From IMG/VR virus record IMGVR_UViG_3300042350_004528, positions 124,001-188,000 of that record: a stretch of 64,000 bases of DNA; one strand, written 5' to 3'. Both the position numbers and the translations under genes were made by a program. This document shows positions 7,074-60,804 of this stretch, in pieces. The notes beneath the pieces are model-generated. The model had not been told where the DNA came from. It saw only the letters and a list, made by a program, of their open reading frames with translations, and did no database searches. The first letter of the stretch is position 1. Every line of letters begins with the position of its first letter.

Positions 7074-8660
7074 ATGGGTGCATTATTAGAATCAGGAAAA
7101 GTTGGTAACGTAAGTTTAAATCATTTAAAAACTGTACGTACTGACGTAATTAACAGATGGGACAGCTTAGGTCTTTTAGAAGGCTTAAATGGACATCGTA
7201 AAGAGAACATCGCTCAGTTGTTCGAAAACCAAGCTTCATACATGTTGAACGAAGCTACATCATTAGGTGTTGAAGGTTCTTTCGAAACTGTTGTGTTCCC
7301 TATCGTGAGAAGAGTATTCTCAAAATTATTAGCAAACGAAATCGTTTCTGTACAAGCTTTGAACTTACCTATCGGTAAATTGTTCTACTTCGTACCGAAA
7401 ATCGGTAGATCAGAATTTGGTAAATCAGGTGGCCCAGAAAGCAATGACCCAAGAAACCAAATGCAGATGGCTGAAGCTTTCAGTGCTAACAAGAATACAT
7501 ACGATGCTTTCTACGGAGAGGATGGTTTGTATGATAAATCAAAAGGTGAGGCTACAACAGCTACTGGTACAACTCATACCGCTAGCTTGTTTAAGTTCAG
7601 CACATCTGGTTTCGCGGTAAAAGCTGGTACCACAATTACATCTGGTACAACTGAAATCGTTAAAGTTACTTTAACTGGTGCTGGAAACTTCGAAAATGCT
7701 GAAGAATTCTTAAGCACAATGGCAGTTTCTTATACTGGTGGTACTTTGGATTATTATTTCCCATCTCAGAAATATGGTACACAGTTAATGGATGGTTCAG
7801 GTGTAACTTATATCGCAGTTGTTGCCCCAGATAACGACAACGTTGATTTGTCTGACATCACTGTAACTTACAAGACTTACGATTCATTAGAATTGTCTGA
7901 CTCAATGGGTGAAGTAAGCTTCGAACTTCAATCTGTAACCGTATCGGTTATCGAAAGAAAGTTAAGAGCACAATGGTCTCCAGAATTAGCTCAAGACGTG
8001 TCAGCGTTCCATAACATTGACGCGGAAGCTGAATTAACAGCTTTATTGTCTGAGCAAGTTGCTGCTGAGATCGACCGTGAGATCTTAAGAGACTTACGTA
8101 GAGGTGCTGCTTGGAGATTGTCATGGGATTACGCTGGTGTTACTGGCCGTGGTATCGACACAACCAACGCAGGTGCATTCTATACTCAAAAAGAATGGAA
8201 CCAAACCTTGATCACTGCGATCAATCAAGTTTCTGCTCAAATCCACAAAGCAACTCTTCGTGGTGGCGCAAACTGGATCGTATGTTCAGCTGAGGTTTCT
8301 GCAATTTTTGATGATTTAGAATACTTCCACGTATCTAACGCTGCTCCTGAGCAAGATAAATTCAACATGGGTATTGAAAGAGTGGGTTCACTTTCTGGTC
8401 GTTACCAGGTTTACCGTGATCCTTACTTCCCAGCTGACACAATCTTGATGGGACACAAAGGAACTTCATTGTTAGACACAGGTTACATTTACGCACCATA
8501 CGTGCCAATGCAATTAACCCCTACAATGTATAATCCGTTTACCTTCGCTCCAGTTAAAGGTATCATGACTCGTTACGCTAAGAAAATGGTTAACAACCGT
8601 TTCTATGGTGTGATCAAAGTTAAGAATATCGTTAGCTTCGGTATCGATGGTTTCAGATAA
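7074..8660 (+). CDS. Major capsid protein (T4 gp23-like)
   Basis: RKLRAQWSPELAQD, HNIDAEAEL, EIDREIL, GYIYAPYVP, PFTFAPVKGIMTRYA. Strongly biased codon usage. Confidence 0.97.
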   Translation: MGALLESGKVGNVSLNHLKTVRTDVINRWDSLGLLEGLNGHRKENIAQLFENQASYMLNEATSLGVEGSFETVVFPIVRRVFSKLLANEIVSVQALNLPIGKLFYFVPKIGRSEFGKSGGPESNDPRNQMQMAEAFSANKNTYDAFYGEDGLYDKSKGEATTATGTTHTASLFKFSTSGFAVKAGTTITSGTTEIVKVTLTGAGNFENAEEFLSTMAVSYTGGTLDYYFPSQKYGTQLMDGSGVTYIAVVAPDNDNVDLSDITVTYKTYDSLELSDSMGEVSFELQSVTVSVIERKLRAQWSPELAQDVSAFHNIDAEAELTALLSEQVAAEIDREILRDLRRGAAWRLSWDYAGVTGRGIDTTNAGAFYTQKEWNQTLITAINQVSAQIHKATLRGGANWIVCSAEVSAIFDDLEYFHVSNAAPEQDKFNMGIERVGSLSGRYQVYRDPYFPADTILMGHKGTSLLDTGYIYAPYVPMQLTPTMYNPFTFAPVKGIMTRYAKKMVNNRFYGVIKVKNIVSFGIDGFR

Positions 8661-30600: not shown

Positions 30601-31557
30601 TGTACCAGACGTACCGTTTGTCCCACTTTCACCCGATGTTCCTGATGTTCCTGTTGTCCCCGATGTTCCTGATGTGCCAGATGTGCTTGGCAACACCATA
30701 TATTTGTCAATTCTTTTTGCTACGATTATAACAGAGGGCGCCGCTGGATAATTAACCCCAGCCCCTAAAGCTGTTATTTGTACATGTTGATTTGTGGATA
30801 AAAATACAAACTCAACACAATCATTAGCTTGTAAATTAAATTGATATGCAACAAATGGTAATTGATATGCGCCATTTCCGCTTAATGTTATAGTTGATGT
30901 TGTCCTGGGCTCGTCATTGCCATTAATTCTTGCCCAAATTATAATATCAGTACCGTTTGCATTTGATGCGGCTTCAATTTGAGCTGAATATCCTATTTCA
31001 TAAACACCAGCATTATCTACGGTAATTTGTGAATTATTTTGTACACTAATGCCATTTGCAATTTCGGTTGTATTATATTCCCAAACGGTTGGTATACTTG
31101 AACCACTGACTACTTGTGTGGTTGAATCACTAAACGACCCATAATAATTATCTCCAGTCCACGAAGTACCAGATGAACCTGCTGTTCCCGAAGTACCAGT
31201 AGTTCCTGATGTACCTGAAGAACCAGAAGTTCCCGACTCACCAGATGTCCCCGATGTACCTGAGTAACCAGATGTTCCTGAGGTACTAGCGGCGGAATAT
31301 GTGAATTGACCCGTTAGCGGATCAAATGTTACGACATATTGCGGATTTAATTCTTGAGTTAATTCCTGATTAACCCAATTACTACCATTATAAACTAAAA
31401 TACTACCAGCTGTTGCGCCAGTTGTTATTATTACATCAGTTAGGTCATCCAGACCTAAGTTCTCAATTGCATTTTTTAGATTATCAAAATTCGCGTCAAG
31501 TTCGCCGAATGTTAAAGGTCTACCTAGTGCGCATCTTAAATATATTGTAACCGCCAT
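15607..31557 (-). CDS. Giant (5316 aa) Gly-X-Y Ser/Thr-rich collagen-like fibre protein with C1q/BclA-like globular domains
   Basis: N-terminus [21 protein letters not shown] resembles phage fibre attachment segments. Beta-sandwich at about aa 135-285 (YYGSF...[11 protein letters not shown]). About 4700 aa of period-3 [19 protein letters not shown]-terminal beta domain (TTVQFDT..YD...RFVIQ). TATTTAT upstream. Confidence 0.85.
16660..30690 (-). repeat. About 14-kb period-9-nt coding repeat (Gly-X-Y triplets) with synonymous variation
   Basis: Plus strand is built of units such as GTTCCTGAT, GTTCCTGAA, GAACCAGAA, GTACCTGAT. Confidence 0.95.
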
Positions 31558-31607: not shown

Positions 31608-34064
31608 CTAACTCAATTTTACGAAAATTTTGTCTTTTTTCGAATCATATGTTATGTTAAACGCCCCTTCAGATGGCATACCGTGTTGTAATAGTTCCTC
31701 AGACATGGGATCTTCAACATATTTTTGAATTGTTCGATTCAATTCTCTCGCACCATATTTTCTATCATAACCAAGCTCAGCTAACTTTTCTTTCGCTTGT
31801 GTTGTTATTTTAAAAGTGTAATTTGACTCAAACAATCTTTCGGATAAATCATCCAATTGAATATCAATTATCTTTAAAATATCATCTTTACTCAAGTAAT
31901 TAAAATAAACTAATTCATCAAGACGATTTAAAAACTCTGGTTTAAAAAATTTACGAAGACTTTTTTCGATAATATCTTGGGCAGATTTTGTTGGATCTTC
32001 ATCAGTCGAAAAGCCAATTTTTGTACCAAAATCTTGTACATCTTTTAAACCAATATTTGACGTCATAATAATAATGGTATTTTTGAAATTAATTTTTCTA
32101 CCACTACCATCTGTTAAATGACCTTCATCCAATAATTGTAATAAAACGTTAAAGATATCTGGATGAGCCTTTTCAATTTCATCAAAAAGTATGAGCGAAT
32201 ATGGTTTATTCTTAACTTTTTCAGTTAACTGTCCGCCTTCATTGTATCCAATATATCCTGGAGGCGCACCAATTAATTTTGAAATGTTAAATTTTTCACC
32301 ATACTCTGACATGTCAACTCTAATCATAGCATCCTGGCTACCAAAAACTTTTTCAGCTAACATTTTTGCTAACTCTGTTTTACCAACACCCGTTGGGCCA
32401 ATGAATAAAAATGAACCAATTGGTTTATTTTGTTTTCTAATACCAGTGCGATTTCTTTTTATTGCAGATGAAATTTTTTGAATCGCTTCATTTTGGCCAA
32501 TAATTGTGTTAGACAATTCAGTATCTATCGTTAACAATTTTTTAATCTCGTTTTGTGAAATTTTTGTAATTGGTATCCCAGTCATAAGCGAAACAACCTC
32601 ACAAACCATTTCATCATTAACAACCATTCTTTTATTGTCGATATTTTCTTTCCAAATTCGAGTTTCTTTTTCTAACTCAGCTGTTGTTTTCTTTTCTAAA
32701 TCCCTCAAATCAGCGGCCAGTTCAAACTTTTGGCTTTTAACAACTTCTTGTTTTCTTTTTTTAATTTCCTTTATCTCGTTTTCGAGTTCTTTAATTTTTT
32801 GTGGGGCTTTAATACTAACTTGTGTTCGAGAGCCAGCTTCATCCATTATGTCAATTGCTTTATCTGGAAATTCTCGATTTGTGATATATCGATCAGCTAA
32901 TCTAATAATCTCGTTGATCGCATCATCGGTATACTCAACTTTATGAAAATCTTCGTACTTTTCACGAATATTCATTAAAATATCCTTTGTTTGTTCAAGT
33001 GTTGGTGGGTTCACCATTACTTTTTGAAAACGTCTATCCAAAGCACCATCCTTTTCAATATGCTCACGATATTCATCCAAAGTTGTAGCACCAATACATT
33101 GCACCTCACCACGAGCCAAAGCTGGTTTAAATACATTAGCGGCGTCTAACGCACCAGATGAATTTCCAGCACCAACAAGGGTGTGTAATTCATCCACAAA
33201 AAGAATGATGTTTGGGTTATCTCTAACTTCCTCAAGCAAAGCTTTAATTCTCTCTTCGAATTGACCGCGATACTTGGTTCCAGCAACCATTGATGTTAAA
33301 TCAAGAGTAACCAATCTTTTATTTTGTAAAGGCCTTGGACATTCATCCATGGCGATTTTAATCGCAAGACCTTCAGCGATTGCTGTTTTACCAACACCAG
33401 GGTCGCCAATTAAAACTGGGTTGTTCTTTTTTCTTCTTGATAAGACTTGAGCAACTCTTTCTACCTCACTATCTCTCCCAATAACAGGATCTAATTTACC
33501 CTCATTGGCTAAAGCGGTTAAATCCCGACTAAAATTATCTAAAATTGGCGTTCTAGATTTGTTTTTAGATGGTGCATTTTCACTTTGGGAACTTTTTTTA
33601 TTTTGATCTTCCTCGCTAAAATAGTTTGACGAAACATTTAATTGCTTTAAACGTCTTTGTATAAATGTTTTTGTGACACCATAATCTTTAATTATTTTAA
33701 TTACGGCAATATCTATATCAAATGAAGTTGTAAAAAATAACTCTGGTGTGATAAACTCATCCTTTTTTTTATTTTTAATACAAAGTTTAATCACTTCTTG
33801 AAGCTCTGGCTCAAAAGTTAAAATTGATTCTGAATTTATATTATCATCGTTTTCCGACTGTTGTTTGTTTATATTTTGAATATCCTGAACAAGCAGATCG
33901 AAATCTTTGATTTTATTTTTCAAAATCTCGTTTATAATATTATCTGATATGATTATTCCATATAATACATGCTCTATTCTTAACTTAGTATCTCTGTAAT
34001 TAACCGCACTTTCCCTACCAATCGCAAAAGCTTGTCGCAACTCATTTGTCATTTTATCATTCAT
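31608..34064 (-). CDS. clpC: ATP-dependent Clp protease ATPase subunit (ClpC-like)
   Basis: Clp N domain, LDPVIGR, GDPGVGKT, AGTKYRGQFEER, UVR-type coiled coil (FELAADLRD), second NBD GPTGVGKTE, GYNEGGQLTE, GARELNR. Confidence 0.93.
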   Translation of the reverse strand: MNDKMTNELRQAFAIGRESAVNYRDTKLRIEHVLYGIIISDNIINEILKNKIKDFDLLVQDIQNINKQQSENDDNINSESILTFEPELQEVIKLCIKNKKKDEFITPELFFTTSFDIDIAVIKIIKDYGVTKTFIQRRLKQLNVSSNYFSEEDQNKKSSQSENAPSKNKSRTPILDNFSRDLTALANEGKLDPVIGRDSEVERVAQVLSRRKKNNPVLIGDPGVGKTAIAEGLAIKIAMDECPRPLQNKRLVTLDLTSMVAGTKYRGQFEERIKALLEEVRDNPNIILFVDELHTLVGAGNSSGALDAANVFKPALARGEVQCIGATTLDEYREHIEKDGALDRRFQKVMVNPPTLEQTKDILMNIREKYEDFHKVEYTDDAINEIIRLADRYITNREFPDKAIDIMDEAGSRTQVSIKAPQKIKELENEIKEIKKRKQEVVKSQKFELAADLRDLEKKTTAELEKETRIWKENIDNKRMVVNDEMVCEVVSLMTGIPITKISQNEIKKLLTIDTELSNTIIGQNEAIQKISSAIKRNRTGIRKQNKPIGSFLFIGPTGVGKTELAKMLAEKVFGSQDAMIRVDMSEYGEKFNISKLIGAPPGYIGYNEGGQLTEKVKNKPYSLILFDEIEKAHPDIFNVLLQLLDEGHLTDGSGRKINFKNTIIIMTSNIGLKDVQDFGTKIGFSTDEDPTKSAQDIIEKSLRKFFKPEFLNRLDELVYFNYLSKDDILKIIDIQLDDLSERLFESNYTFKITTQAKEKLAELGYDRKYGARELNRTIQKYVEDPMSEELLQHGMPSEGAFNITYDSKKDKIFVKLS

Positions 34065-41012: not shown

Positions 41013-44000
41013 ATGGCAACAAAACCAAATGTATTAAATGAAGTAAATGACATGAGAAGACATATGGGTCTTCCTTTGTTATCTGAGTCCGAGTTACTTA
41101 ATTTAGAAATAAATGAACTTTTAAATGAAGGTACCTGGGAAAATGTAAAATATGCCTTATCAAAATTGGGTAGATATAAAGCTGGTGGTAAAATATTCGG
41201 TAAATCACAAACCGATGCTAAGGCTTTAGCACAGATAACAGCCTTACTTGATAAAGTAGGTAATGAAAAAATCAAAGAATTAGATAGAAGTATCAAACAA
41301 TCTAATCCAGAATTTCCTAATAACAAAAGTCAACAACAGTTTTTGGATACTATTATTGAAATTGCAACTTTATATGATTCATTAGTGGCTGCAACTAAGT
41401 TAAAACCAAACGATAAAGGTTATCTACCAGTTGATGCCGCAAATGCGATTATTGAGGATTTAAGAGCTTACACACAAAAATATTTAGATGTTGATTTAAC
41501 AGCTGCGTTTAGTGTGTTTAATGAGAATGAGGAAATTGGTACTGAAAATTGGATTACACCCGATGAAGTTGAAAGTGATTATGGTTTTTATAGTGATATG
41601 TACAAAGGTGTTTATGGTGTAAGACCACACGGTCAATCAGCCGAACAACTTTGTAATTGGTTGAATTCTCAATTTAAACTCAATGGTAATAGGATCGTTA
41701 GAAAAGATGGTCAAGATGAATTATATGAAGCTGATTTAGATGCAACTAAAGCTAAAGTTGCTGGTAAATTTGCTGACACTAAAGCAGCAATTAAAAGTGG
41801 TGATTTAAAAGCGTATAATACAGAAAGAATGAAAACTTTAAAGTCGTGGAAATTACCATTGGCTTTATTAGGCGCTGGAGCGTCATTTGGTGCCCTGAGT
41901 TGGTTAATTGAATATATTTTCCCACCAGAAAAGATTACCACAATGACACCAGAAACGGTCAAACAAACAACTCAGGAATTACTTGGTAATATAAAACCAG
42001 GTGAGGGTATGACTCAAATCATGAATAGAACTTTGGGTCTTAGTTTAAGCCCAACCTCTAACCCAAATGATGTTGTAGAAGCACTTAAAACTTTAGGTGG
42101 TGGTAATGCACAAACTGGTGTTGATATTATAACACAACAAGGTGGTATATTCAGAGATCCAGTTGCGGCTAAAGAAACATTATCAGCTATCGTTGCAAAC
42201 CCAACTGAACATGGAACAACCTTAAAACAAGTTTTTACTGGAACTTGGGCTGGTACGGGTAAAATGGCTGGTGACACTTTAGTTACGGTGTCTGGCGGTA
42301 ACTTAGTTGGTATGGTAACTAAGGCCTTCACAACTTGGGTTGCAAAAACAACCACAATTAAAAGTGCTAAAGCAATTGTTGCCGCACCAATATTAAAGGG
42401 TTTAGGTATTTTGTTAGCCGCTGGTGCGGTTGCAACGGCATTGGGTAGATACAAAGGTAGAAAATCATCACGTGCACAAATAATGAATGATTTGGTTCAA
42501 TATATCAGACCTATTGAAGGTACAAAAGATAACCCAGATGTTGTTGATGATCCTAACAAAGATGATGGTGGAGATAATAAACAACAAGGTGGTGGAAATA
42601 ACAAGCAACTTTACGACAATCTTAAAAAATATTTTCAGGACATTTTTAATTTCAAAGCGCAAACAAACACTGATACCTACGGAAAAGGCGGTAGCGGAAA
42701 TGCAACTAAACAATATAGCGGTGGTGGACGTGTAACTAGTAAAGTAACACAACCTAATGACATTGACGATATCCTTAAATTAATGGAAGAGGATTTGAAG
42801 TTATACGAATCATTATGTGACATGGATATGTTAGCAGAAGCTGATAGTAGCTTAATGAGATCGATTAACACAAGAGCGACTAATGTTGATACAAGTGATA
42901 AAGGCTTAGCCGACATAGGGTTAAGTCAAAATCAATTAAAATTATTTAAAACACATGTTATGCGTTTAAGTAATTTGATTAAAATGATTAATAAGTTTAA
43001 TTCTGGTGATAAGAATTTAAACAAACTTGTTGCACAAGCAAAATCAAATCCAATATTTAATAAAATTACCGATGATAAAGTTGTTGGTATTGATATTAAC
43101 GAATTATTGAAATCTGACCCAAAAAGTTTAAAAATATTTGTAAGTGATTTTAATAAAGCTGTTTACGCCACTCAATTTAAGAATGGTAATAACATAATGG
43201 ATCAACTTAAAAACATTGGCATCAATAAACTATCAGAGGCTGCTGTAAGAACCCCAAGTAAATCGCAAGCAAACGCTGTTTATAACGCAAGAAGAGAGTT
43301 CTTACAAAACTTTCCTAACCTGATCAAAAGTTTTTATGCAATATTTTCATATTTAATCGATTTGGCCAAAAAGGGTGGTTTAACATCTGGATCAAATCGT
43401 GGCTCTGGACAAGGTGGACAACAAGGTGGTGGATCTGGTCAAGGAACTGGAACTGGACAAGGCGGACAACAAGGTGGTGGATCTGGTCAAGGAACTGGAA
43501 CTGGACAAGGTGGATCAAATCAAGGTGGTGGATCTGGACAAGGAACTGGCTCTGGACAAAGTGGACAACAAGGCGATGGATTCACAGATTTAGATTTTAG
43601 AAGAGAACCTTTACGTCTTGAAGAATCTATTGAATTAATGGAATTAATTGAAGCACATGACAACCTAAATTCAATAATTGAAAGTGTTCTAAAAGAGTTT
43701 GGTGAAAACCAACCTGAAATGGAACAAGGTAGACAAGATGCTGTAAAAAATAGCGATAGTGGTAGAATTTTCACCCAATTAGCTAGAGTTGTACCAGATT
43801 TAAGCACTAAGATAGCTTCTGAGTATAAACAAGCATATGGTCAACAAGTAAATCGCGTTAAATTAGCAAACTTTTTACAAACAGTTTTGGGCGCACTGGC
43901 TAATGTACCACAACAAAAAATGGTTCAATTAATTAATCGTGCCGATATGGATGTTACAGCGTACAGAAGAATGTTAAGAGACATAAAATCTGGTGCTGAA

Positions 44001-44270
44001 GGGCAAGGTCAAGAACCACAAGGTCAACAACAAGCTCAGGCCCCACAGTTTAATCCAGGTACACCAGAAAGGTTTTTACCAGATACGGTTGGTAATTATG
44101 ATTTATCAAAAATCAATCAATCCGCAAGAATAGCACTGGCACAAAAAGCCGCTCAGATCATTAGTAGAAACACTGATATGAAATTGGATTCCACTAATAT
44201 GATGGAGGTTATGAAACAACTTCTTGATGACATCAGTAAAAACGGACAAAAACAGATTCCAACAATCTAA
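41013..44270 (+). CDS. Large putative internal/ejection protein with membrane segments
   Basis: N-terminal tag LNEVNDMRRHMGL, two hydrophobic helices (LPLALLGAGASFGALSWLI; APILKGLGILLAAGAVATALG), Gly/Gln repeat, many LxE sites. Confidence 0.6.
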   Translation: MATKPNVLNEVNDMRRHMGLPLLSESELLNLEINELLNEGTWENVKYALSKLGRYKAGGKIFGKSQTDAKALAQITALLDKVGNEKIKELDRSIKQSNPEFPNNKSQQQFLDTIIEIATLYDSLVAATKLKPNDKGYLPVDAANAIIEDLRAYTQKYLDVDLTAAFSVFNENEEIGTENWITPDEVESDYGFYSDMYKGVYGVRPHGQSAEQLCNWLNSQFKLNGNRIVRKDGQDELYEADLDATKAKVAGKFADTKAAIKSGDLKAYNTERMKTLKSWKLPLALLGAGASFGALSWLIEYIFPPEKITTMTPETVKQTTQELLGNIKPGEGMTQIMNRTLGLSLSPTSNPNDVVEALKTLGGGNAQTGVDIITQQGGIFRDPVAAKETLSAIVANPTEHGTTLKQVFTGTWAGTGKMAGDTLVTVSGGNLVGMVTKAFTTWVAKTTTIKSAKAIVAAPILKGLGILLAAGAVATALGRYKGRKSSRAQIMNDLVQYIRPIEGTKDNPDVVDDPNKDDGGDNKQQGGGNNKQLYDNLKKYFQDIFNFKAQTNTDTYGKGGSGNATKQYSGGGRVTSKVTQPNDIDDILKLMEEDLKLYESLCDMDMLAEADSSLMRSINTRATNVDTSDKGLADIGLSQNQLKLFKTHVMRLSNLIKMINKFNSGDKNLNKLVAQAKSNPIFNKITDDKVVGIDINELLKSDPKSLKIFVSDFNKAVYATQFKNGNNIMDQLKNIGINKLSEAAVRTPSKSQANAVYNARREFLQNFPNLIKSFYAIFSYLIDLAKKGGLTSGSNRGSGQGGQQGGGSGQGTGTGQGGQQGGGSGQGTGTGQGGSNQGGGSGQGTGSGQSGQQGDGFTDLDFRREPLRLEESIELMELIEAHDNLNSIIESVLKEFGENQPEMEQGRQDAVKNSDSGRIFTQLARVVPDLSTKIASEYKQAYGQQVNRVKLANFLQTVLGALANVPQQKMVQLINRADMDVTAYRRMLRDIKSGAEGQGQEPQGQQQAQAPQFNPGTPERFLPDTVGNYDLSKINQSARIALAQKAAQIISRNTDMKLDSTNMMEVMKQLLDDISKNGQKQIPTI
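43400..43575 (+). repeat. 48-bp-period tandem repeat encoding GQGGQQGGGSGQGTGT
   Basis: About 3.5 degenerate copies. Confidence 0.8.
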
Positions 44271-45598: not shown

Positions 45599-46138
45599 TT
45601 ACACCATTTTTGAAACTGGTTTTGTTGACCATGTTCTGCAAGCCCAGTATCTCGCTTTCCATCTTGGGCCTGGGTTATCGCAATGGTGTCTTGCTCTGAA
45701 GTTTTTTCTACGTCTAGGGTTATCCCTTTTGATTTCCATATTAGGGTCACCAAATTCAACTTTTACAACATTACCCTTAGCGTTTTTAACGTGTACTTTA
45801 TATTTTTTACGATCACCACGCATAATCTTACCCAAACTTACCTTTCTACCTTTATATTCAGCCTCATCTAAATTTTCCGTCATTGTATAATATTCATACA
45901 AAGCTTCGTTAACAATTTTTTCTAAAGCTATTTCGGTTAAAACGCCCTCATATAAACGTTCATCAACAAAACTCAAGTCATCGATTATACCATAACCAGT
46001 TTGCATATTGCAAACCTCATCTATTAAAGATGCGATTGTTTTATTCGTAAAACCAGATTCTTTTTTGATTTCTTCACTTTCCATTTTTGGACTATTTTCG
46101 TGGAATAATTCCACCAAATCTTTTTTAGTTGTGATCAT
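45599..46138 (-). CDS. Two-part protein: acidic N-terminus, basic conserved phage domain (FGDPNM...FRARHHC...ARYWAC)
   Basis: The halves are separated by ENLDEAE. TATTTAT at 46151-46157 (minus). Confidence 0.7.
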   Translation of the reverse strand: MITTKKDLVELFHENSPKMESEEIKKESGFTNKTIASLIDEVCNMQTGYGIIDDLSFVDERLYEGVLTEIALEKIVNEALYEYYTMTENLDEAEYKGRKVSLGKIMRGDRKKYKVHVKNAKGNVVKVEFGDPNMEIKRDNPRRRKNFRARHHCDNPGPRWKARYWACRTWSTKPVSKMV

Positions 46139-46203: not shown

Positions 46204-46602
46204 ATGAAATTTATACCAAAAGAAAGGTACGCAATTAATTATCCAGGTAGAAATACCTTAATACTTGTTGACGTTGATAAATTTTTAAATCGTTTAAAAA
46301 AAGATGACCCAGATTTTTATGTTGGGCCAGATACAAAATTATTATTTAGTCAGGGTAGAATTAAAAACTCAATGGATTACATTGAAAAGTTTTCAGAAGA
46401 TCCCAGATCAATTCATCCAAAAACGGGTGAGAGGTGGTCGTACACTATGATGTTTGAACCAACCGAAACAAGTATATCTAACGGTAAATTAGGTATAAAA
46501 AATGGTAGACACAGAATGGTTGCTTTAAAGAATTTAGGTTACACCCATGCTTATGTTGAGGTACCCAAAGATCAAACTGATTTATTTAAAGATTTAGCTT
46601 AA
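46204..46602 (+). CDS. ParB/Srx-like domain protein
   Basis: NGRHRMVALKNLG motif. TATTTAT at 46182-46188. Confidence 0.6.
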   Translation: MKFIPKERYAINYPGRNTLILVDVDKFLNRLKKDDPDFYVGPDTKLLFSQGRIKNSMDYIEKFSEDPRSIHPKTGERWSYTMMFEPTETSISNGKLGIKNGRHRMVALKNLGYTHAYVEVPKDQTDLFKDLA

Positions 46603-47183
46603 CAACCAAGCGTTTGTTTTGCTTCATTGCGCAAGTTTTCGTTGTAAATCCCATCCTCGTCATCAACATTTTCACATGTAACAATTAGGAAAAATGCAGC
46701 GCCAGTAGTCCACTCATCCATATTACCAATACCTAAGTTTTTACCCTTTTTAGTATGATAATTTAAATAACTCTCCAAAGCATCACCAATTTGGTCATCA
46801 TCTACATATTCCTTCCAATCACTAGCGGTTGTTAAATATTTACCATCCTCATCCTCATCCTCTTCTTGAGCCCTTTCTAAAAAGTCCCATAATTCATCTT
46901 TTATGTCGCTGTTTTGATCATCCCAAACTTCATCCATTGTATATAACAATTCGTTAGTTTTTTTGTTTTTTAAAAGGTATTCACCACTAGTAACACTAAC
47001 TAATTCATAATCACCACTAGCTGTTATTGCATCACTCATATGCGGATCACTTTGATTCCATGGGGCGTCTGGCGTATCTGAGCCAGCTGGGTAATTATAA
47101 TTATCCATCTCTTGAACTCTCTTCATTTCTAATTTCTCGAACAATTTTTGTAATTGGTCTTCGGTTATTCTGTATTTAGCCAT
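46599..47183 (-). CDS. Acidic hypothetical protein, N-terminal YRITEDQL motif
   Basis: TATTTAT at 47199-47205 (minus). Confidence 0.7.
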   Translation of the reverse strand: MAKYRITEDQLQKLFEKLEMKRVQEMDNYNYPAGSDTPDAPWNQSDPHMSDAITASGDYELVSVTSGEYLLKNKKTNELLYTMDEVWDDQNSDIKDELWDFLERAQEEDEDEDGKYLTTASDWKEYVDDDQIGDALESYLNYHTKKGKNLGIGNMDEWTTGAAFFLIVTCENVDDEDGIYNENLRNEAKQTLGC

Positions 47184-48176: not shown

Positions 48177-48779
48177 TTAATATTCAAAAATAATTTTATT
48201 TGGTTGTAATCTACCGCTGATGGCTTGAGTATAAAAAGCATCGCCACTTTCATAAGTTCTATTAGATTCAAATACAACCTCAGTATCCATTGATGGAATT
48301 TCAATATTTTTTCCACCCAAATCCATAGTCCCACTTAAAGTGTTTGTTTTTAAACCACTTCTATCGAACTCTAATTCAAAGTCTTTCTCAAAAGAATCAT
48401 CATCACCAGTTAATTCCAATGAGCCATAAATCAAAACACTAATAGGTGATAAATAAACATCTTTAATACCATATGACCTGTATTCTATTTCAATTGAATA
48501 GTTGGCAACGGCCCCACGAAATGTTATATATGTGTCATACTCAACACCATCCACAATCACAGTTGCCCCCCTTGTCCCTGGTTTTGCTATGTTTTTAAAT
48601 AAAGCTTCCATATCGATATCTAGATCAATATCGGAACCACTTTTCAATTCGTTTCTAAAAACATTATTAGATGCGTCAGCCTCATTCATATTAGCTGATT
48701 CGTTAGATTGTTTGTCTTTTTGTTTTTTACTGAGTATGGCAGCAAATTGAGTTTCAGATATTCTATATGTTTTTTTCAT
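48177..48779 (-). CDS. Hypothetical protein, N-terminal YRISETQF motif
   Basis: TATTTAT at 48792-48798 (minus). Confidence 0.7.
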   Translation of the reverse strand: MKKTYRISETQFAAILSKKQKDKQSNESANMNEADASNNVFRNELKSGSDIDLDIDMEALFKNIAKPGTRGATVIVDGVEYDTYITFRGAVANYSIEIEYRSYGIKDVYLSPISVLIYGSLELTGDDDSFEKDFELEFDRSGLKTNTLSGTMDLGGKNIEIPSMDTEVVFESNRTYESGDAFYTQAISGRLQPNKIIFEY

Positions 48780-51017: not shown

Positions 51018-52193
51018 TTAAATGTAATTAATAATCTTTTTAAATCTATTAATCGCCTCGTTAAGTTTCTCATCTTCTTCGTAAACTTTACCTTCAGCAC
51101 CAGCTCTCATTTTCATAAAAGAACCCTCTTCTTTAACTTCTTCCTGACCACCCTCTTCCATTGGCTTATCTTCACCTTCAGCAAAAGTACCGTCTTCTCT
51201 TACAGCGCCCGATTCAATATCATCCATACTTGGTACAGCGTATTTGTTAGTCTCTTGTTCTTCGTAATCTTTTATCATAGCTTCAATCTCATCAACACCA
51301 TCTTGAGCGTTTTTGGTGAAACCTGTTAGTCTGCTATAAGCATTACTCAACCACTGTTTAACTTTTCCGAACATTTCTTCAACACCCTCAAAAACTTTCG
51401 AACCATCAATCTTTAATTGGCCTTTAACCTTTGAGGCTACTTTAGAGTTTTCTAAAATTTGTTCAAGAACTTTTCTAGTGTTCTCGTTAACTTTTGTTAA
51501 CGCAGTCTCAAACGCATCTTTATATGATGTTGTTAATTTTTCAGATTCCTGGATTATTTCAACCAACATCTCATCTATTGAAATTTTTAGTTTTTCGGCA
51601 CCTTGGGTCTGACCTTTAAATGCATCCATAACCTCTGGAACCAAAGCGCTTTTTTGTGTTTCCAAATCAGCTATTGATTCTTTATAAGTTTTTAACGCCT
51701 CATCTAATTGAGTTTGAATTGTTTTTAATTCAGCTATTTTTTGGTTAATTGTATTTTCCATATTTTCATTTATATTTTTTTTATCGTCATTGGTTTTAAC
51801 ACCAATCTTGGTGGTTTTACCCCAAACTGATGTTCTTATTTTACCCTGTTTGTTTTTTAATGTCACCTCAACTTTTCCACTCGGCGTTTTAGCCCCACTT
51901 GAAACTGAAACTATTTCTTCACCACTGGTAATTATATCACCCTTTTTTAAGTATTGGGCTTCTTTTCGATCAACACCTTCCTGTAAACTTTTTTCATCTT
52001 TATCAATACCCATGGCAACTCTAAAATCATTATAATCGTAAGCCAAGTCGGTTGCATATCTGTAAACGGCTATATCAATTTTACCGTCTGGGTATTTACC
52101 CCAGCAATACACCCATTTCTCACCACCCATTTCAAATGGCGTTTCATCTCTGTATGGTTTGTAATATTCAACAACATCCATAGTACTTCTCAT
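51018..52193 (-). CDS. Multi-module protein with C-terminal tag KLNEAINRFKKII
   Basis: Modules separated by LQEG and INEN. Coiled coil. TATTTAT at 52211-52217 (minus). Confidence 0.7.
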   Translation of the reverse strand: MRSTMDVVEYYKPYRDETPFEMGGEKWVYCWGKYPDGKIDIAVYRYATDLAYDYNDFRVAMGIDKDEKSLQEGVDRKEAQYLKKGDIITSGEEIVSVSSGAKTPSGKVEVTLKNKQGKIRTSVWGKTTKIGVKTNDDKKNINENMENTINQKIAELKTIQTQLDEALKTYKESIADLETQKSALVPEVMDAFKGQTQGAEKLKISIDEMLVEIIQESEKLTTSYKDAFETALTKVNENTRKVLEQILENSKVASKVKGQLKIDGSKVFEGVEEMFGKVKQWLSNAYSRLTGFTKNAQDGVDEIEAMIKDYEEQETNKYAVPSMDDIESGAVREDGTFAEGEDKPMEEGGQEEVKEEGSFMKMRAGAEGKVYEEDEKLNEAINRFKKIINYI

Positions 52194-53027: not shown

Positions 53028-53645
53028 ATGAATCATCATATCGAAGACGAATTAAAACAAAAGTACCCAGACATCAGGTTTGAGTTATACCCAAATGAAA
53101 AGCACAAAAGGATATATCTCACTGGATTTATGGTTCCACCTAACATGCGTGGAACTGGTATTGGTACTTCTTTTATGAACGATTTAACAAGTCTTGCTGA
53201 TCAACACGGTTATAAATTAACATTAACACCATCAAGCAGTTATGGTGGAAATGTGAACAGATTGAAAGATTTCTACCAGAGATTTGGTTTTGTTTTTAAT
53301 AAAGGTGATAATCGTGATTTCACACACAAGGAAGATATGTACAGGGATCCTAAGATTAATGAAGAGGATTCGTCAAGCACATCGAGCACATCAAGTGGTT
53401 CAAGTGGTGGGACATCAGCCTCAAATAGTCCAGTACCAGATAGAGTTAAAAAAGGAAAAGCAAATCCAATATCAAATACTGGTAAATACGAATTTGGTAC
53501 AACCAGAGGAAAAGCAAATCCAATATCAAATACTGGTGCTTATGACTTTGGAACAAATCGTGGCCCAGCAAACCCAATATCAGAAAATAAAAATAATCGC
53601 CTGGATGAGGCGATTATTAATATGAAAAAATTGATTAATTTTTAA
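53028..53645 (+). CDS. GNAT-family acetyltransferase with RGKANP repeats and C-terminal tag
   Basis: VPPNMRGTGIGT (acetyl-CoA motif A), LKDFYQRFGF. Three (K/R)G(K/P)ANPIS repeats, then RLDEAIINMKKLI. Confidence 0.8.
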   Translation: MNHHIEDELKQKYPDIRFELYPNEKHKRIYLTGFMVPPNMRGTGIGTSFMNDLTSLADQHGYKLTLTPSSSYGGNVNRLKDFYQRFGFVFNKGDNRDFTHKEDMYRDPKINEEDSSSTSSTSSGSSGGTSASNSPVPDRVKKGKANPISNTGKYEFGTTRGKANPISNTGAYDFGTNRGPANPISENKNNRLDEAIINMKKLINF

Positions 53646-53646
53646 T

Positions 53647-54741
53647 TTAAGACCATTTGTTTAACATTTGGTAATTGTGAACTTCGTTCCATTTATTTGC
53701 GTCATAATTACCCCCTTTCCAATATTGGAATGAACCTATTCTTATATCACCCCCAGCTGTTAAGCCCAATCTGAAAATATTATCAAATATCAGTTCAGTT
53801 GTTCCAACTTGTTGTACATAATTTTCATTACTATCATCAGCAATAAATAGTTGACCAGCATCGTTTCTACCAAAAATAAGGGTTATCCAAGTATTAACTT
53901 GTGCACTCATTGATACGGTATCAGCACCCATAGTAAATTGGTATACGTTTGTAGCAATATCATATCTAAGTCTCGTAATCCCCCCATCAGCATAAATTAT
54001 TGCTGGTGAATTACTGGCCTGCGGTGTGAATCTGAGCCTCAACGCAAACATAAAAGACTCACCAGATGAAGTATTAAGGGGTGCTATATATGAAGCCGCA
54101 TTGGATGAATCTAAATCTATGTATAAATTTGCCGCATTAAATCTTCTATTATAAGTTGAATTATCGCCCGCGGTTTGTATTGATGTGGAGATATTTCCAG
54201 CGACATTTTTTGTAAACCATCTTTCTATTACACCATCAGTTGCTTGAACCAAATCGTAACATTTTGTTAAATTAGTCTCAAGAATGTCGCAATTAAGATT
54301 ACCGAAATCAATATTTAACATTAAATTAGGGGTGTCAGCGTATTTGTATTTTGATAAATCAGCCAAAAAATGATTTAAATTTTCATTTTCAATAACGTAT
54401 CTTTTGGCAACATCCACGTCACTATAATACGTGCCATCAATTTTTATTGAATGCAAACTATTAATTATGTGTACAATTTCCGCATTGGTTTTACCAGTGA
54501 CGTGATATGTTGGAATCGTGGGCTCACCGCCAACACCTTCTACATTTCCTCTTGATACGATATAATATTTTTCGCCACCAAAATTACCCGCAGGATAACC
54601 TGGTCTCCAAGTAAGACCCGTTGAATTTCCGTCTTGAAAATTAAACCCTTCATTAATGTGGCCATAGCAATATTTACCAATTCTATGATATTGATCAATC
54701 GTTGGTGCGGTACCGTATTGTATAGTTACTGGAACTGACAT
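53647..54741 (-). CDS. Putative virion protein with degenerate LamG-like domain
   Basis: Architecture resembles the first half of 34640..36325 (NLMLNIDFG, NTWITLIFGR). TATTTAT at 54758-54764 (minus). Confidence 0.5.
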   Translation of the reverse strand: MSVPVTIQYGTAPTIDQYHRIGKYCYGHINEGFNFQDGNSTGLTWRPGYPAGNFGGEKYYIVSRGNVEGVGGEPTIPTYHVTGKTNAEIVHIINSLHSIKIDGTYYSDVDVAKRYVIENENLNHFLADLSKYKYADTPNLMLNIDFGNLNCDILETNLTKCYDLVQATDGVIERWFTKNVAGNISTSIQTAGDNSTYNRRFNAANLYIDLDSSNAASYIAPLNTSSGESFMFALRLRFTPQASNSPAIIYADGGITRLRYDIATNVYQFTMGADTVSMSAQVNTWITLIFGRNDAGQLFIADDSNENYVQQVGTTELIFDNIFRLGLTAGGDIRIGSFQYWKGGNYDANKWNEVHNYQMLNKWS

Positions 54742-54804: not shown

Positions 54805-55518
54805 ATGAATTTAAACGAGCAGATATTAAGAATGAAAACCATGATCGGTTTATCCGAGGTTACCATTCCACAATCAATTAAAAAATCGGTTGGTGATGTT
54901 TTGTTTGGTTCAAATCCAATAATTGCAAAAATTCAAAACAAACCAATTGAAAAGAATACCCCATACGAGGATAACCTGGTTGACAAAATAAAGGATTGGA
55001 CATTTCAATCAACAGAAAAATCCGAGATGGGCGTTGTATCAACAATATCCGATTTAATTAAACTAAAAAAATATTTTCCAGAGGTTCTCAACCCACCGTA
55101 TGGTGAAAAAGTTTACAGAGGAACATCGGTTAAATTACCAGAGCTATCCAAATTCATAAAAGAAAACCCAGAACATGATGTTTTGGATAACGGTGCGGTT
55201 AAATTTAAAACACCCTACCAGTATACCCCAAAAAGAGAAGTTAGTAGTTGGAGTGCATCCTTGTTCTACGCATCATCATTTCAGGGCAAATCATTCGAGA
55301 GTGCTGTGAATGTCCCAGTTATTTTTGAAACAACTGTCGATGACACATTCATTATGAATCCAAAAGTTATGAACATCATATTTAAATCAACGGGCGGTGT
55401 TCACCAGGATTTTATAAGGGACGAGGACGAGATTATGAAGTACAACCCGAGTGGTACTTACCATCTAATTTTGTCAGAAGACGAATACGAAATATTCGCA
55501 CCAAATGCCGAGGTCTAA
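54805..55518 (+). CDS. Putative ADP-ribosyltransferase (R-S-E type) with N-terminal tag
   Basis: KVYRG, VSSWSASLFYASSF and RDEDEI follow the R / SxS / ExE order. N-terminus LNEQILRMKTMIGL. Confidence 0.6.
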   Translation: MNLNEQILRMKTMIGLSEVTIPQSIKKSVGDVLFGSNPIIAKIQNKPIEKNTPYEDNLVDKIKDWTFQSTEKSEMGVVSTISDLIKLKKYFPEVLNPPYGEKVYRGTSVKLPELSKFIKENPEHDVLDNGAVKFKTPYQYTPKREVSSWSASLFYASSFQGKSFESAVNVPVIFETTVDDTFIMNPKVMNIIFKSTGGVHQDFIRDEDEIMKYNPSGTYHLILSEDEYEIFAPNAEV

Positions 55519-56742: not shown

Positions 56743-57360
56743 TTAATCTTCTCCGCCCCAATCTTTATAATCACCAAATCTTTCGTTGTCTTCATAACCA
56801 GCGTTGTACGCTTCGATTTCTTCTGGTGTTAAATCGGTGATTCTCTCACCTTTGTAAGTTCCTTCTGGATACTTATGTGGGCTCTTGGGTCTTCTGTAAT
56901 ATGAATCGGCGTGACCGCGATCATATGGTGATCCGTGCGAATCATCGTATTTCTCACTTCTACCCTCCTGAAATATTTCAGTTCTTGGTTCATCGTAATG
57001 ATCCAACTTACCTATTGGGTAACGTTCGCCCGTCTCAGCGTTGTATTTAATGATTATCTTACCATCATCACTATCACCTATAAAATAATGTACATTATCA
57101 TCAGCTAAACTATAATATAATGGTCTGTCATAATCGTCAAACTCTCTTTGAACAACTTTTTCACCACTTGCGGATTCGATCGCGGCTTTTTCGAAATCGA
57201 AATCACTTTCCATTTCCTCGCCACCTCTTTCGGAATTATAGTTAAAAATATCATCGGTGTATGCATTTGGATTATCCACCTTTGATAGATCAATTTCTTC
57301 ATTAAGACCCATTATTTTGCGGAGTCTCGCAATTTCTTCATTTAATGTATTCTTTTTCAT
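56743..57360 (-). CDS. Tagged multi-module protein (LNEEIARLRKIMGL)
   Basis: Start MKKNTLNEE at 57360, TATTTAT at 57380-57386. C-terminal small domain HGSPYDRGHADSYY...AYNAGY. Confidence 0.75.
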   Translation of the reverse strand: MKKNTLNEEIARLRKIMGLNEEIDLSKVDNPNAYTDDIFNYNSERGGEEMESDFDFEKAAIESASGEKVVQREFDDYDRPLYYSLADDNVHYFIGDSDDGKIIIKYNAETGERYPIGKLDHYDEPRTEIFQEGRSEKYDDSHGSPYDRGHADSYYRRPKSPHKYPEGTYKGERITDLTPEEIEAYNAGYEDNERFGDYKDWGGED

Positions 57361-57415
57361 AGAAAAAAACAATTTATTGATAAATAGTTTGTCAAATCCA
57401 AAAATATTTATGAAC

Positions 57416-57724
57416 ATGGTAAAACTTTTTGAGAGAATACATATCCCATTGTGGATCGCAAAGGATATGTTCTGGATGTTGGGTCAGGGCGAACTCTCAT
57501 TGGCTTTCGCGATACCAACCATAATATTATCAACAATACTCATAACAGTAAAACAGGGGTCGGAAAGGTGGCTCGAGATGATGATGGCCTTTTGGTTATC
57601 AGCCAATACCTTATGGATGTCCCACGAGCTTTTTCATACGGACACAAAAGAAATTGCATTAACCTGTTTTTTATTTGGCATTTTAACAATTCCAATCTAT
57701 TTATTAAAGATAAAAGAAGAATAA
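57416..57724 (+). CDS. Small multi-pass membrane protein
   Basis: HIPLWIAKDMFWM..., about four hydrophobic segments. Start at 57410 or 57416. Confidence 0.65.
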   Translation: MVKLFERIHIPLWIAKDMFWMLGQGELSLAFAIPTIILSTILITVKQGSERWLEMMMAFWLSANTLWMSHELFHTDTKEIALTCFLFGILTIPIYLLKIKEE

Positions 57725-57732
57725 AACTAGTT

Positions 57733-59307
57733 ATGAAACTAACTGAGGAAATAAAGAAAATGCAATCCATGATGGGCATTATGTCCGAGGATGTGAAAAT
57801 ATACGCAAACGGTGTTGGATCTGAGGTGTTTAATGATAACGAACATTACGGAAAGGTTGATGATATTAATTTAAATGACACCATAGCAAATGAACCGTTT
57901 AAGGATATGGAATACATGGATAAAAGTTCCAATGTCGATGATATGGTTCAAGCCTTGAAATCTGGTGAAGAGCTGCCACCAATACTTGTTATTCAACACC
58001 CCTTCGACCAATCAAAATATTTGGTTGTCGATGGAAACCATAGAAGATACGCATATGACCGCGCAGGTGCTGATAAGATTCCAGCCGTTGTGATTAAACC
58101 AGAGGATGTTTTGTTAATGCAATCCGATTGGGGTGATCCAGAGGAAAAGGCGATCAGATTATCTGATGTTATATCCGATCCAGAGTTGTTTGCTCGAGAA
58201 AACACAAGAATGTTAATTGACAAGTATTTTGTTAAACCAGACGGATCACATGAGTTCGAATTGAATGAAAATTTATATGAGGAAAAGAAAAAAGCCGATC
58301 GTTGTTTAAGAATAGCGAGAAGAAAATACAGCAAACCATCAGCATATAGATCTGGTGCAATCGTTCAATGCAGAAGAGGAAAGATATGGAGAGGTTTGAA
58401 GGAAGAGGAGATCCAAATGATTGACAACGCACCAGAGGAAATGCAAGGTTTGATCGCCAAGGCTCACGATGCTTTGACGTGGAAGAGGGGTCGAAAAGAA
58501 TATGCTCCAGATTTTAATGAACTTCAAACATGGGTGGATGCTTATTTGGAGACTGACGGTGGAATGCATGAAGCGAAGAAAACCGATTTCTCAAAGGAGA
58601 AAAAGAGCGGACTTCACGGATGGTTTTCAAGAAGAGGTGGTGGCGGAAGCAAAGGATGGGTTGATTGCAACACATGCAGAAAAGTTGACGGAAAGAAAAA
58701 ATGCAAGGCTTGTGGAAGACAAAAGGGTGAGGTGAGAGCCAAGTACCCATCATGCAGACCAACACCAGCATCATGCGGAACACCAGGAAAGGGAAAATCT
58801 TGGGGCAAGACAAAGGAAGAGGGTTACAGCTTGAATGAAGCCAAGGAGATGAAGAGAGTTGCTTTGCTTTTCATTGTGATTGACAACGAAGCGTTGTTGT
58901 TCAAGAGAAGCGAAGACGAAACAACAAATCCAGGAAAATACGGAATGCTTGGTGGTGGAATTGAAAAGAATGAAACGCCAGAGGAAGCAATCGTGAGAGA
59001 GATCAGAGAAGAAGCTGGTGTTGAGTTGAAATCATTCAAACCACTGAAGAAATATATTTACAACAACGAGTGTGAATTAAACGTATTCTACACAAACGAA
59101 TTTCCAATTGATGATGTTGTGCTTGACAAGAACGAACACACATCGTACAAATATTTCACGATGGAACAATTGATAGATATGGATCCAAAGGATATGATTG
59201 GTTCCAACAAAGAAATCGCGAAGGATTACAACGAGATCGCAAACAAGAAAAAGAAATTGGAAGAAGAGATAGAGAGAATAAAAGCTACGATGAAGATTCT
59301 TATTTAA
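57733..59307 (+). CDS. Tagged polyprotein-like fusion: ParB/Srx domain, two Cys-rich basic modules, NUDIX hydrolase
   Basis: LPPILV...VDGNHRR (ParB). PSAYRSGAIVQC and GWVDCNTC...CGR...YPSCRP modules. Nudix box GGGIEKNETPEEAIVREIREEAG. Tags at both termini. Start at 57733. Confidence 0.8.
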   Translation: MKLTEEIKKMQSMMGIMSEDVKIYANGVGSEVFNDNEHYGKVDDINLNDTIANEPFKDMEYMDKSSNVDDMVQALKSGEELPPILVIQHPFDQSKYLVVDGNHRRYAYDRAGADKIPAVVIKPEDVLLMQSDWGDPEEKAIRLSDVISDPELFARENTRMLIDKYFVKPDGSHEFELNENLYEEKKKADRCLRIARRKYSKPSAYRSGAIVQCRRGKIWRGLKEEEIQMIDNAPEEMQGLIAKAHDALTWKRGRKEYAPDFNELQTWVDAYLETDGGMHEAKKTDFSKEKKSGLHGWFSRRGGGGSKGWVDCNTCRKVDGKKKCKACGRQKGEVRAKYPSCRPTPASCGTPGKGKSWGKTKEEGYSLNEAKEMKRVALLFIVIDNEALLFKRSEDETTNPGKYGMLGGGIEKNETPEEAIVREIREEAGVELKSFKPLKKYIYNNECELNVFYTNEFPIDDVVLDKNEHTSYKYFTMEQLIDMDPKDMIGSNKEIAKDYNEIANKKKKLEEEIERIKATMKILI

Positions 59308-60120: not shown

Positions 60121-60804
60121 TTATATTCCAACGGTTGGTGAGTCCATGTTCTCACTTAAACCATAATGTTTCTCAACCAAAGTTTCAAAGTAATTTAAAA
60201 GTCCTTCTTTACCAATACCACTTTCTTTGGCTTTCGCAATGAAGTCATCAGCACTAGCACCAATTCCACCTTGAATCCAGTCCACATCAGCAGCTGTGAT
60301 TATTTTTTCATTGATTGGTTCCTCACTCATTCTATTTAAAAAACTATTTAATTTTCCATTACTATAAGTTAAACCAAGTTCTTTGGTTAACTTTTCAAGT
60401 ACTCTAACCACTTGAGTTTTATATGGGTCTGAATAAGCTCTAACAAAAGATCCAGAGCCACGATTAAACATGAAACCGTATATTCTTTGATCTATTTGAC
60501 TAATCACATATTTTTTCTTCTCTTCTGGTTCTGTTGGTATTGACCCAGTATATTTTTGGTCTGACTCAACAAAATCGGTTACCAGTTTATTAAAAGCTTC
60601 CACAAATTCTTTTGCTTTTGTTGGATTTTCTTGCCAAGAATCATTACGAGCACTATTATTAATTGATAAACCTTTAATTATTGGTTCCATACGTCCAAAG
60701 CCATCATCAATTATTTTAACGGAATCAACGAACTCGTTTAGATTCTCATTAAGGCCCATCATCTGGCGTATTCTTAAAACTTCTTCATTTAAGGTATTAT
60801 TCAT
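60121..60804 (-). CDS. Tagged protein (LNEEVLRIRQMMGL)
   Basis: TATTTAT at 60826-60832 (minus). Confidence 0.75.
   Translation of the reverse strand: MNNTLNEEVLRIRQMMGLNENLNEFVDSVKIIDDGFGRMEPIIKGLSINNSARNDSWQENPTKAKEFVEAFNKLVTDFVESDQKYTGSIPTEPEEKKKYVISQIDQRIYGFMFNRGSGSFVRAYSDPYKTQVVRVLEKLTKELGLTYSNGKLNSFLNRMSEEPINEKIITAADVDWIQGGIGASADDFIAKAKESGIGKEGLLNYFETLVEKHYGLSENMDSPTVGI

Follow-up and report, generated by a model that had tools for sequence, protein, structure and literature searches.

In phage T4 the prohead protease gp21 cleaves after L/I-X-E and trims the ADP-ribosyltransferase Alt at both ends (PMC9026906, in the parts drawn on here), and T4 heads keep fragments of 2.5 and 3.9 kDa. 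In the jumbo phages phiKZ, 201phi2-1 and SPN3US, gp21-related proteases likewise cleave behind the Glu of a three-residue motif in many proteins of the head interior, often at several sites per protein; their motif differs in being S/A-x-E, cleavage there mostly strips propeptides and does not separate shuffled domains, and the same parts of that paper report no tag common to the inner-body proteins (PMC9026906). The polyvalent proteins, in turn, are highly mosaic phage polypeptides that each unite several unrelated effector domains, and Iyer, Burroughs, Anand, de Souza and Aravind (2017) draw a polyprotein analogy for them; release is proposed via an embedded peptidase (zincin-like MPTase) that is frequent and not universal, and the sections of that paper used here describe neither linker punctuation nor a portable tag (PMC5512222). 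Here we describe a polyprotein gene at 57733..59307 (+) of a 64,000-nucleotide stretch of DNA (the window), which comprises bases 124001-188000 of one 298,833-bp contig of a jumbo T4-like phage (IMG/VR record IMGVR_UViG_3300042350_004528); the phage is known from metagenomes only. The product consists of five autonomous modules joined by short hydrophobic-x-Glu linkers, with a helix cap at each end. We consider it, with a probability of about 0.6, to be a capsid-loaded cargo precursor processed by the prohead protease of the phage, a reading that we draw from sequence comparisons.

All coordinates are those of the window unless stated otherwise. The gene is laid out as follows, with x for any residue and an arrow for a predicted cut:

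57733..59307 (+): polyprotein gene, 524 aa plus stop, open reading frame (ORF) open
57733..57789 (+): N-terminal tag, residues 1-19, MKLTE↓EIKKMQSMMGIMSE↓, with two [LM]xE flanks; predicted helix
57790..58269 (+): module A, residues 20-179, ParB/Srx superfamily, acidic, isoelectric point (pI) 4.5
58258..58281 (+): junction 1, LNE↓NLYE↓E, a tandem LxE pair
58282..58404 (+): module B, residues 184-224, 41 aa, pI 11.0, ends in LKE↓
58405..58572 (+): module C, residues 225-280, 56 aa, acidic, helical hairpin (predicted local distance difference test, pLDDT, ~80), ends in MHE↓
58573..58839 (+): module D, residues 281-369, 89 aa, pI 9.9, zinc-ribbon-like, ends in LNE↓
58840..59265 (+): module E, residues 370-511, NUDIX hydrolase
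59257..59304 (+): C-terminal tag, residues 509-524, LEE↓EIERIKATMKILI; predicted helix

The true start is likely the ATG at 57733. The database gene model begins at GTG 57451 and encodes 618 aa, the 94 added residues being common to no relative, and it is probably an over-extension. As a separate observation, an ORF at 57257..57724, which codes for a hydrophobic protein (~110 residues), overlaps the 94-residue extension in another frame and ends 9 nt ahead of ATG 57733.

Modules A and E belong to recognisable families. A single-sequence Pfam scan of module A matched ParB_N at residues 50-128 with 23.7 bits, under the 26.3 cut-off. The profile built from its relatives matched the structures of SbnI (5e-6), ParB (4e-5) and sulfiredoxin (7e-3), as well as Noc and serine kinase structures, and the D, G, H and R of the DGxHR motif are invariant (16 sequences). 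Module E matches PF00293 at residues 374-487 (Pfam, E 9e-17), its Nudix box is intact (GGIEKNETPEEAIVREIREEAGV; pattern Gx5Ex7REUxEExGU) and its AlphaFold2 model is confident (pLDDT ~90). Foldseek places it with MutT, NudC, NUDT12 and RppH at E ~1e-9; these top structural matches are enzymes acting on 8-oxo-dGTP, NAD(H) or NAD caps, and RNA 5' pyrophosphates, and they are equally good, without discrimination among them. The modules in between, B, C and D, are named by no library in the Pfam and PHROGs scans, and a profile of B-D found nothing significant among solved structures, the best E values of 0.2-1 belonging to chance-level zinc-finger or ribosomal matches. Module B carries two Cys (ADRCLRIARRKY..PSAYRSGAIVxCRxGKIW) and aligns with DUF5872 (PF19197) over profile positions 5-32 only, with 17.7 bits, below the cut-off of 27.5. 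Pfam lists PF19197 for one relative (P0117), and another (P0104) scored 23.1 bits when scanned, likewise short of the cut-off. Module D has six invariant Cys (GWVDCNTC..CKxCGR..YPxCRPTP..C) and 34 invariant columns in 49 sequences; its look-alikes in the ESM Atlas are viral proteins of 84-87 aa that fall only in unnamed clusters, with scores <0.9, and are a lead only. AlphaFold2 was run on the whole protein (32-row alignment) and on residues 176-370 (49 rows), and only the NUDIX domain and, in part, module C were modelled with confidence, the models of A, B and D being too poor for a fold search. No peptidase domain was found in the polyprotein by the Pfam and PHROGs scans. The ParB and NUDIX domains named in a preliminary description of this DNA, made from the sequence alone, are borne out by these profile and structure matches.

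The polyprotein contains nine [LIM]-x-E motifs, as its composition predicts, and eight of the nine lie in the 63 residues that belong to no module core. They flank the N-terminal helix (residues 3 and 17), occupy the four junctions (177, 181, 222, 278 and 367) and stand at the start of the C-terminal helix (509); the sole motif inside a core, at residue 424, falls in the Nudix box and catalytic helix. In the cores (461 aa), within-module shuffles lead us to expect 6.6 +/- 2.3 motifs against the one observed (P = 0.005). The junction strings are LNENLYEE (residues 176-183, 58258..58281), LKEEE (222-226, 58396..58410), MHEAK (278-282, 58564..58578) and LNEAK (367-371, 58831..58845). They had been proposed to coincide with domain boundaries, and indeed the internal end-points of BLAST alignments to 119 relatives cluster at residues 171-190, 221-240, 271-290 and 351-380.

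These relatives are the best 119 of >1,100 obtained from one word-index search, and the five modules were mapped in them with iterated profiles. We found the module orders B-C-D-E, B-A-D-E, B-A-E, C-D-A, A-D, B-D and C-E, so that modules are shuffled, inserted, deleted or alone, and GNAT, ART-PolyVal, an AAA_33 kinase-like domain and unknowns are inserted between them; both of the arrangements that the preliminary description had asked about in other phages, shuffled and stand-alone modules, are thus seen. In Flavobacterium phage immuto, the nearest cultured phage with part of the finding, B and D occur together in a separate 157-aa LxE-punctuated gene, and the phage also encodes Peptidase_S77. 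The genes for two distant polyprotein relatives (P0072 and P0086) are followed on their own strand, four to five genes further downstream, by terminase and a T4-type portal. A search of viral contigs with the polyprotein alone as query returned only near-identical copies.

Among 27 representatives (non-redundant relatives, <60% identical), 54 of the 61 internal module starts have [LIMV]xE ending <=8 residues upstream, against a background of 23% (binomial p ~4e-27), and 56 of the 65 module ends have it within a few residues, against 28% (p ~8e-23). Together with the eight of nine motifs outside the cores of the polyprotein itself, these counts agree with the enrichment at boundaries that had been suggested. 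Chance as the source of the placement is rejected by the depletion of the cores and by the junction count of 54/61. Because the relatives share ancestry, the binomial p-values overstate independence, and three qualitative points therefore weigh more. First, the P2 residue of the junctions drifts (K, S or N; D, E, H or N; N, T or S) with hydrophobic P3 and Glu P1 held, which gives LKE, LSE or LNE at one junction, MDE, LEE, LDE, IDE, VDE or MHE at another and LNE, MNE or INE at a third. Second, the motif is kept whichever modules are joined: among the unique junctions of the relatives, hydrophobic-x-Glu stands at almost every module joint, and the few apparent exceptions have Val first (VDE, VEE, VNE). 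Third, proteins that have module D last terminate at ...WGKTK and lack both linker and LNE. These observations indicate that the motif is a property of the joint and not of either module. Distant relatives that carry no tag follow the same rule (IDE↓KKKGGDDRC..., IDE↓KTDYSKEK..., LEE↓AEYRGRKV...), and punctuation extends to more proteins than the tag does.

The second element of the system is the helical tag. A tag profile was built from the copies seen first and searched across the genome, where we found seven firm copies, all at 51-61 kb of the window, in six proteins and always at the extreme N or C end. The tags reported at both ends of the polyprotein are real. The other proteins that carry the tag, and a further punctuated neighbour, are the following:

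51018..52193 (-): coiled-coil protein, C-terminal tag LNE↓AINRFKKIINYI
53028..53645 (+): GNAT acetyltransferase, C-terminal tag LDE↓AIINMKKLINF
54805..55518 (+): protein with N-terminal tag MNLNE↓QILRMKTMIGLSE↓
56743..57360 (-): protein with N-terminal tag; its only two LxE flank the tag
60121..60804 (-): protein with the most consensus-like N-terminal tag, LNE↓EVLRIRQMMGLNE↓NLNE↓
45599..46138 (-): protein with a C-terminal DUF5872-like basic module after NLDE↓AEYKGRKV

The preliminary description had seen the punctuation of the polyprotein in three of these genes as well, and we found it in the NLDE↓AEYKGRKV junction of 45599..46138 and at the tag flanks of 56743..57360 and 51018..52193. The junction of 45599..46138 recurs in relatives as MNE↓AEYKGR and LEE↓AEYQGR. 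Its DUF5872-like module also ends one relative (P0096) and stands alone in Pelagibacter and Roseobacter podo- and siphoviruses and in an archaeal spindle virus.

From 44 distinct copies we determined the tag consensus L-N-E-(E/Q)-(I/V)-x-(R/K)-(M/I/L)-(K/R)-x-(M/I)-(M/I)-(G/N)-(L/I)-N-E. The tag is 14-16 residues long and amphipathic, with hydrophobic positions in a heptad pattern, and forms helices in the models. Third-codon identity between copies is as low as 0.17-0.67, so the tag is conserved as a peptide and not as DNA; a DNA-level repeat as its explanation was rejected, the codons not being common to the copies. N-terminal and internal copies have LxE on both sides and C-terminal copies have it at their start, so that cutting at these motifs would excise the tag. 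Among the 119 relatives, the tag is N-terminal in 15, C-terminal in 38, at both ends in nine and internal only in six, and 51 have none; an internal copy of some kind occurs in 23. Since relatives also carry it between modules, the tag is not strictly terminal.

A case of gene fission illustrates how the tag behaves. In a 310-kb relative, one gene (L006 7453..8679, 408 aa) corresponds to 53028..53645 and 54805..55518, with a single internal tag linking the two parts. In the window these halves are split by an opposite-strand gene of 364 aa (53647..54741), and the tag is C-terminal on the first half and N-terminal on the second. Both halves thus keep a tag, which is the outcome expected if each separately translated chain needs one.

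Beside these firm copies, we noted a divergent N-terminal tag, VLNE↓VNDMRRHMGLPLLSE↓, in the 1,085-aa product of 41013..44270 (+). That protein has hydrophobic membrane-like stretches and Gly/Gln-rich repeats (GSGQGTGTGQGGQQGG), and 21 LxE where 9.5 would be expected; possibly it is a large ejection protein that undergoes processing. In the 310-kb relative, next to the polyprotein homologue, the gene L006 11844..13550 codes for an ADP-ribosyltransferase of the ART-PolyVal family that has the tag in its interior, …KE-LNE↓QIKRIREVMGLNE↓S…, and is the counterpart of the packaged Alt of T4.

The left end of the window is a T4-type head module with its genes in the T4 order of portal, core proteins, protease, scaffold and capsid:

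545..2392 (+): portal, Portal_T4 (Gp20)
between the portal and the AAA ATPase: two small coiled-coil or unknown genes
3652..4575 (+): AAA ATPase, between portal and prohead protease
4623..5339 (+): prohead protease, Peptidase_S77 (T4 gp21 family), proposed to process the polyprotein
5790..7040 (+): acidic coiled-coil scaffold-like protein at the position of T4 gp22, with 17 LxE motifs
7074..8660 (+): major capsid protein, Gp23 family

The product of 4623..5339, which had been taken for the prohead protease, is a Peptidase_S77 homologue (PF03420, 68.8 bits, cut-off 27). The capsid protein is only 27-34% identical to the capsid proteins of isolates, so we regard the phage, whose genome has a G+C of 33-34%, as a deep branch of the T4 superfamily. 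Residues 1-60 of the capsid protein contain four LxE and the other 468 residues three, and ...YMLNE60↓A61TSLG aligns exactly on ...SFLTE↓AEIGG of T4 gp23, where Glu65↓Ala66 (LTE65↓A66) is the known maturation cleavage site. Indirectly, this aligned site and the four LxE of the propeptide suggest that the specificity of the window protease resembles that of T4. LxE is also abundant in the N-terminus of the protease, in the scaffold-like protein and in the product of 2435..3151, as it is in the core proteins of T4. According to the preliminary description, the prohead protease would cut the polyprotein into separate small effectors; every computational test that we ran (protease family, LNE↓A of the capsid, P3 and P1 of the junctions, shuffled and stand-alone modules) agrees with such processing.

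Within the head module, the scaffold-like protein ends in ...LNE↓STAYKNPQLERMLDIIGKIK, a loosely tag-like helix with no match to the tag profile, and the product of 2435..3151 ends in ...IIE↓IEKIINLKE↓SLN, also loosely tag-like, with a tag-profile E of 38 that is not significant. A complex prediction for the 5790..7040 protein and residues 1-40 of the polyprotein scored 0.00, with controls not run, and speaks neither for nor against binding. A second ATPase, ClpA/B-like, of 818 aa, is encoded at 31608..34064 (-) (phrog_4871, E 3e-253), with GATATTTAT upstream. Either this protein or the AAA ATPase of 3652..4575 could serve in the loading or unfolding of head cargo, a role that a survey of jumbo phages proposed for BCS1-like and Clp ATPases (PMC7824862).

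A promoter-like motif suggests when these genes are expressed. The window has 12 copies of the 9-mer GATATTTAT, a number that none of 100 shuffles reached (1.5 expected), and each copy precedes a start codon by 6-45 nt and is correctly oriented (4599, 5738, 34141(-), 34607, 39694, 46151(-), 46180, 47199(-), 48792(-), 53002, 54789 and 60826(-)). Behind it stand the genes for the protease, the scaffold, a virion structural protein and the Clp-like ATPase, and six tagged or punctuated genes. Across the genome, almost all copies that precede an ORF fall at genome 54-185 kb, with outliers at ~0.8 and 248 kb; the ORF behind the copy at genome 81650 (minus) has, by eye, a sheath-like N-terminus. We regard GATATTTAT as a candidate late (or middle) promoter of the phage, and its distribution suggests that these genes are expressed together with head assembly. 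An xCTATTTAT variant stands ahead of the polyprotein gene and of two other tagged genes.

By analogy with T4, where a capsid-targeting sequence (CTS) addresses the internal proteins and Alt, the tags would dock the precursor to the core of the assembling prohead. After shell assembly the prohead protease would cut behind each L/I/M-x-Glu, strip the tags and separate the modules into about five products of 18.3, 4.9, 6.5, 9.7 and 16.5 kDa, which would remain with the packaged genome and pass into the host upon infection. Among these products, B and D, as very basic peptides, would probably sit on the packaged DNA, and the ParB/Srx and NUDIX enzymes would probably have an early effect in the cell, with nucleotides or the ends of nucleic acids as targets; that these enzymes degrade nucleotide signals or counter defence, as the preliminary description proposed, is speculation. 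We infer docking, cleavage, retention, injection and all biochemical roles, and the scheme leans on the T4 precedents of the CTS, the trimming of Alt and the small fragments kept in heads.

The likeness to the T4 internal proteins IPI-III and Alt extends to the T4-type head module with its gp21-family protease and conserved capsid maturation site, and to a non-essential, diverse and partly basic cargo with a short terminal propeptide, putative in this phage, ending in L/I-x-Glu. N-terminal tags here end in LNE, LSE or MSE, and the T4 CTS has ~10 residues ending in L/I-x-Glu. The differences are that T4 cargo is single-domain with one N-terminal propeptide of 7-10 residues, whereas the polyprotein has five modules per chain and internal predicted cut sites, and that the tag is longer than the T4 propeptide (14-16 aa), unrelated to it in sequence and found at the N end, at the C end or between modules. 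The IPIII CTS reads MKTYQEFIAE. A second N-terminal motif, which ends in I-x-E and resembles that sequence, begins two neighbouring genes, 46599..47183 (-) (MAKYRITE↓DQL...) and 48177..48779 (-) (MKKTYRISE↓TQF...), both behind GATATTTAT; it has no further copies in the genome. With the polyvalent proteins the family shares a mosaic build from unrelated domains and a repertoire, in that its GNAT, ART-PolyVal, NUDIX, ParB/Srx and AAA_33 kinase-like domains match the ParB/Srx, GNAT, ART-PolyVal, NUDIX-associated and kinase families described for those injected proteins (PMC5512222, in the parts drawn on here). It differs from them in that the separators match the capsid's own maturation protease in place of an embedded peptidase, and in that the modules are much smaller. 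The small basic proteins of the 'HVA1 family' or DUF5872-like kind are separate genes there, and are concatenated with enzymes and protease motifs in this phage and in T4-like phages related to it. In the literature that we searched, with incomplete coverage, neither a linker-punctuated cargo polyprotein nor a tag of this kind is described, and the same search gave nothing relevant on DUF5872 or on virion proteomics of immuto.

Several observations count against a packaged and processed precursor. The shared ancestry behind the p-values has been mentioned. The 51 tagless relatives, mostly of a distant branch, are punctuated and have no recognisable tag, and by eye the tag consensus shows no sequence likeness to the T4 IPIII CTS. 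The models of A, B and D are of too low a confidence to judge linker disorder. The polyprotein gene lies ~50 kb away from the head module, in a neighbourhood of mixed function that includes metabolic and replication genes, and is preceded by the variant TCTATTTAT and not by the exact promoter-like motif; GATATTTAT, moreover, also stands ahead of the Clp-like ATPase and is therefore not exclusive to virion genes.

The alternative that survives best, and that we still consider unlikely, is a late protein that stays in the cytoplasm, its terminal helices being signals for an AAA+ ATPase (31608..34064 or 3652..4575) or coiled-coil elements, and any processing being cytoplasmic. Short tags at chain ends do resemble degrons in their positional logic, the ClpA/B-like ATPase follows the same promoter-like motif, an AAA ATPase sits within the head module, and the remote position of the gene, amid metabolic and replication genes, fits such a role. 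A terminal degron, however, would not tolerate the internal tag seen in 23/119 relatives, and in every case the motif of the prohead protease borders the tag. The related polyprotein genes that adjoin terminase and portal, and a domain repertoire that is that of injected effectors, also argue for the head and against the cytoplasm.

Decidedly improbable, in our view, is a polyvalent effector of 60 kDa that is packaged and stays uncut, with its acidic linkers as flexible spacers and its tags serving packaging or oligomerisation. Precedents for intact transfer exist in the N4 virion RNA polymerase, ArdC and TraC1 (PMC5512222, in the parts drawn on here), and linkers rich in Glu and hydrophobic residues will yield LxE by chance, the background being 23-28% per interval scanned. 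Yet chance and composition leave the 54/61 junctions, the invariant P3 and P1 around a variable P2, and the depletion of the cores unexplained. Moreover, the conserved maturation site of the capsid protein bears the same motif, and exposed LxE linkers are expected to be cut in a capsid with an active gp21-type protease. That tag and LxE linkers are by-products of recombination, favoured by DNA-level shuffling and without a role in the protein, is highly implausible even though gene fusion and fission fall exactly at tags, because the copies have the tag peptide in common and not its codons (third-position identity 0.17-0.67), and because the junctions vary in their P2 codons and keep P3 and P1, a pattern that points to selection on the peptide and not on DNA homology.

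Elsewhere in the window lies 15607..31557 (-), an ORF of 5,316 residues with 47.5% G+C against 33% for the genome. Almost all of it consists of collagen-like Gly-X-Y triplets (Ser 30%, Gly 28%, Thr 20%) flanked by a globular domain at either terminus, with many nested tandem repeats of periods 18-396 nt, and its opposite strand carries a spurious ORF of 4,779 aa. The product is probably a giant fibre.

Returning to the cargo precursor, we put forward a broader and more tentative proposal, to which we give somewhat less than even odds, that a family of T4-like phages (largely jumbo phages, probably of Bacteroidota) has a plug-and-play cargo in which a position-independent tag directs any polypeptide to the prohead and hydrophobic-x-Glu separators let the maturation protease of the capsid free arrays of effectors from one precursor. 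Provided that every chain retained one tag, genes would be at liberty to fuse, to split and to exchange modules, and the AAA+ ATPase of the head module might take part in loading. The released B, D and DUF5872-like peptides, ultra-conserved, basic and Cys-rich, of 4-10 kDa, would form a new DNA-associated or anti-defence class. If the precursor is indeed processed as we propose, a tailed phage would use its capsid maturation protease as the polyprotein processor for injected effectors, which would join the capsid targeting and processing of T4 with the polyvalent-protein arsenal, so far described separately. The tag together with hydrophobic-x-Glu would then be a simple sequence rule that predicts capsid cargo in uncultured T4-like phages, and engineered phage heads could borrow it as a natural design by which several proteins are loaded and released. 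Many small basic proteins (>1,100 relatives from a single search) would likely be first-wave infection factors.

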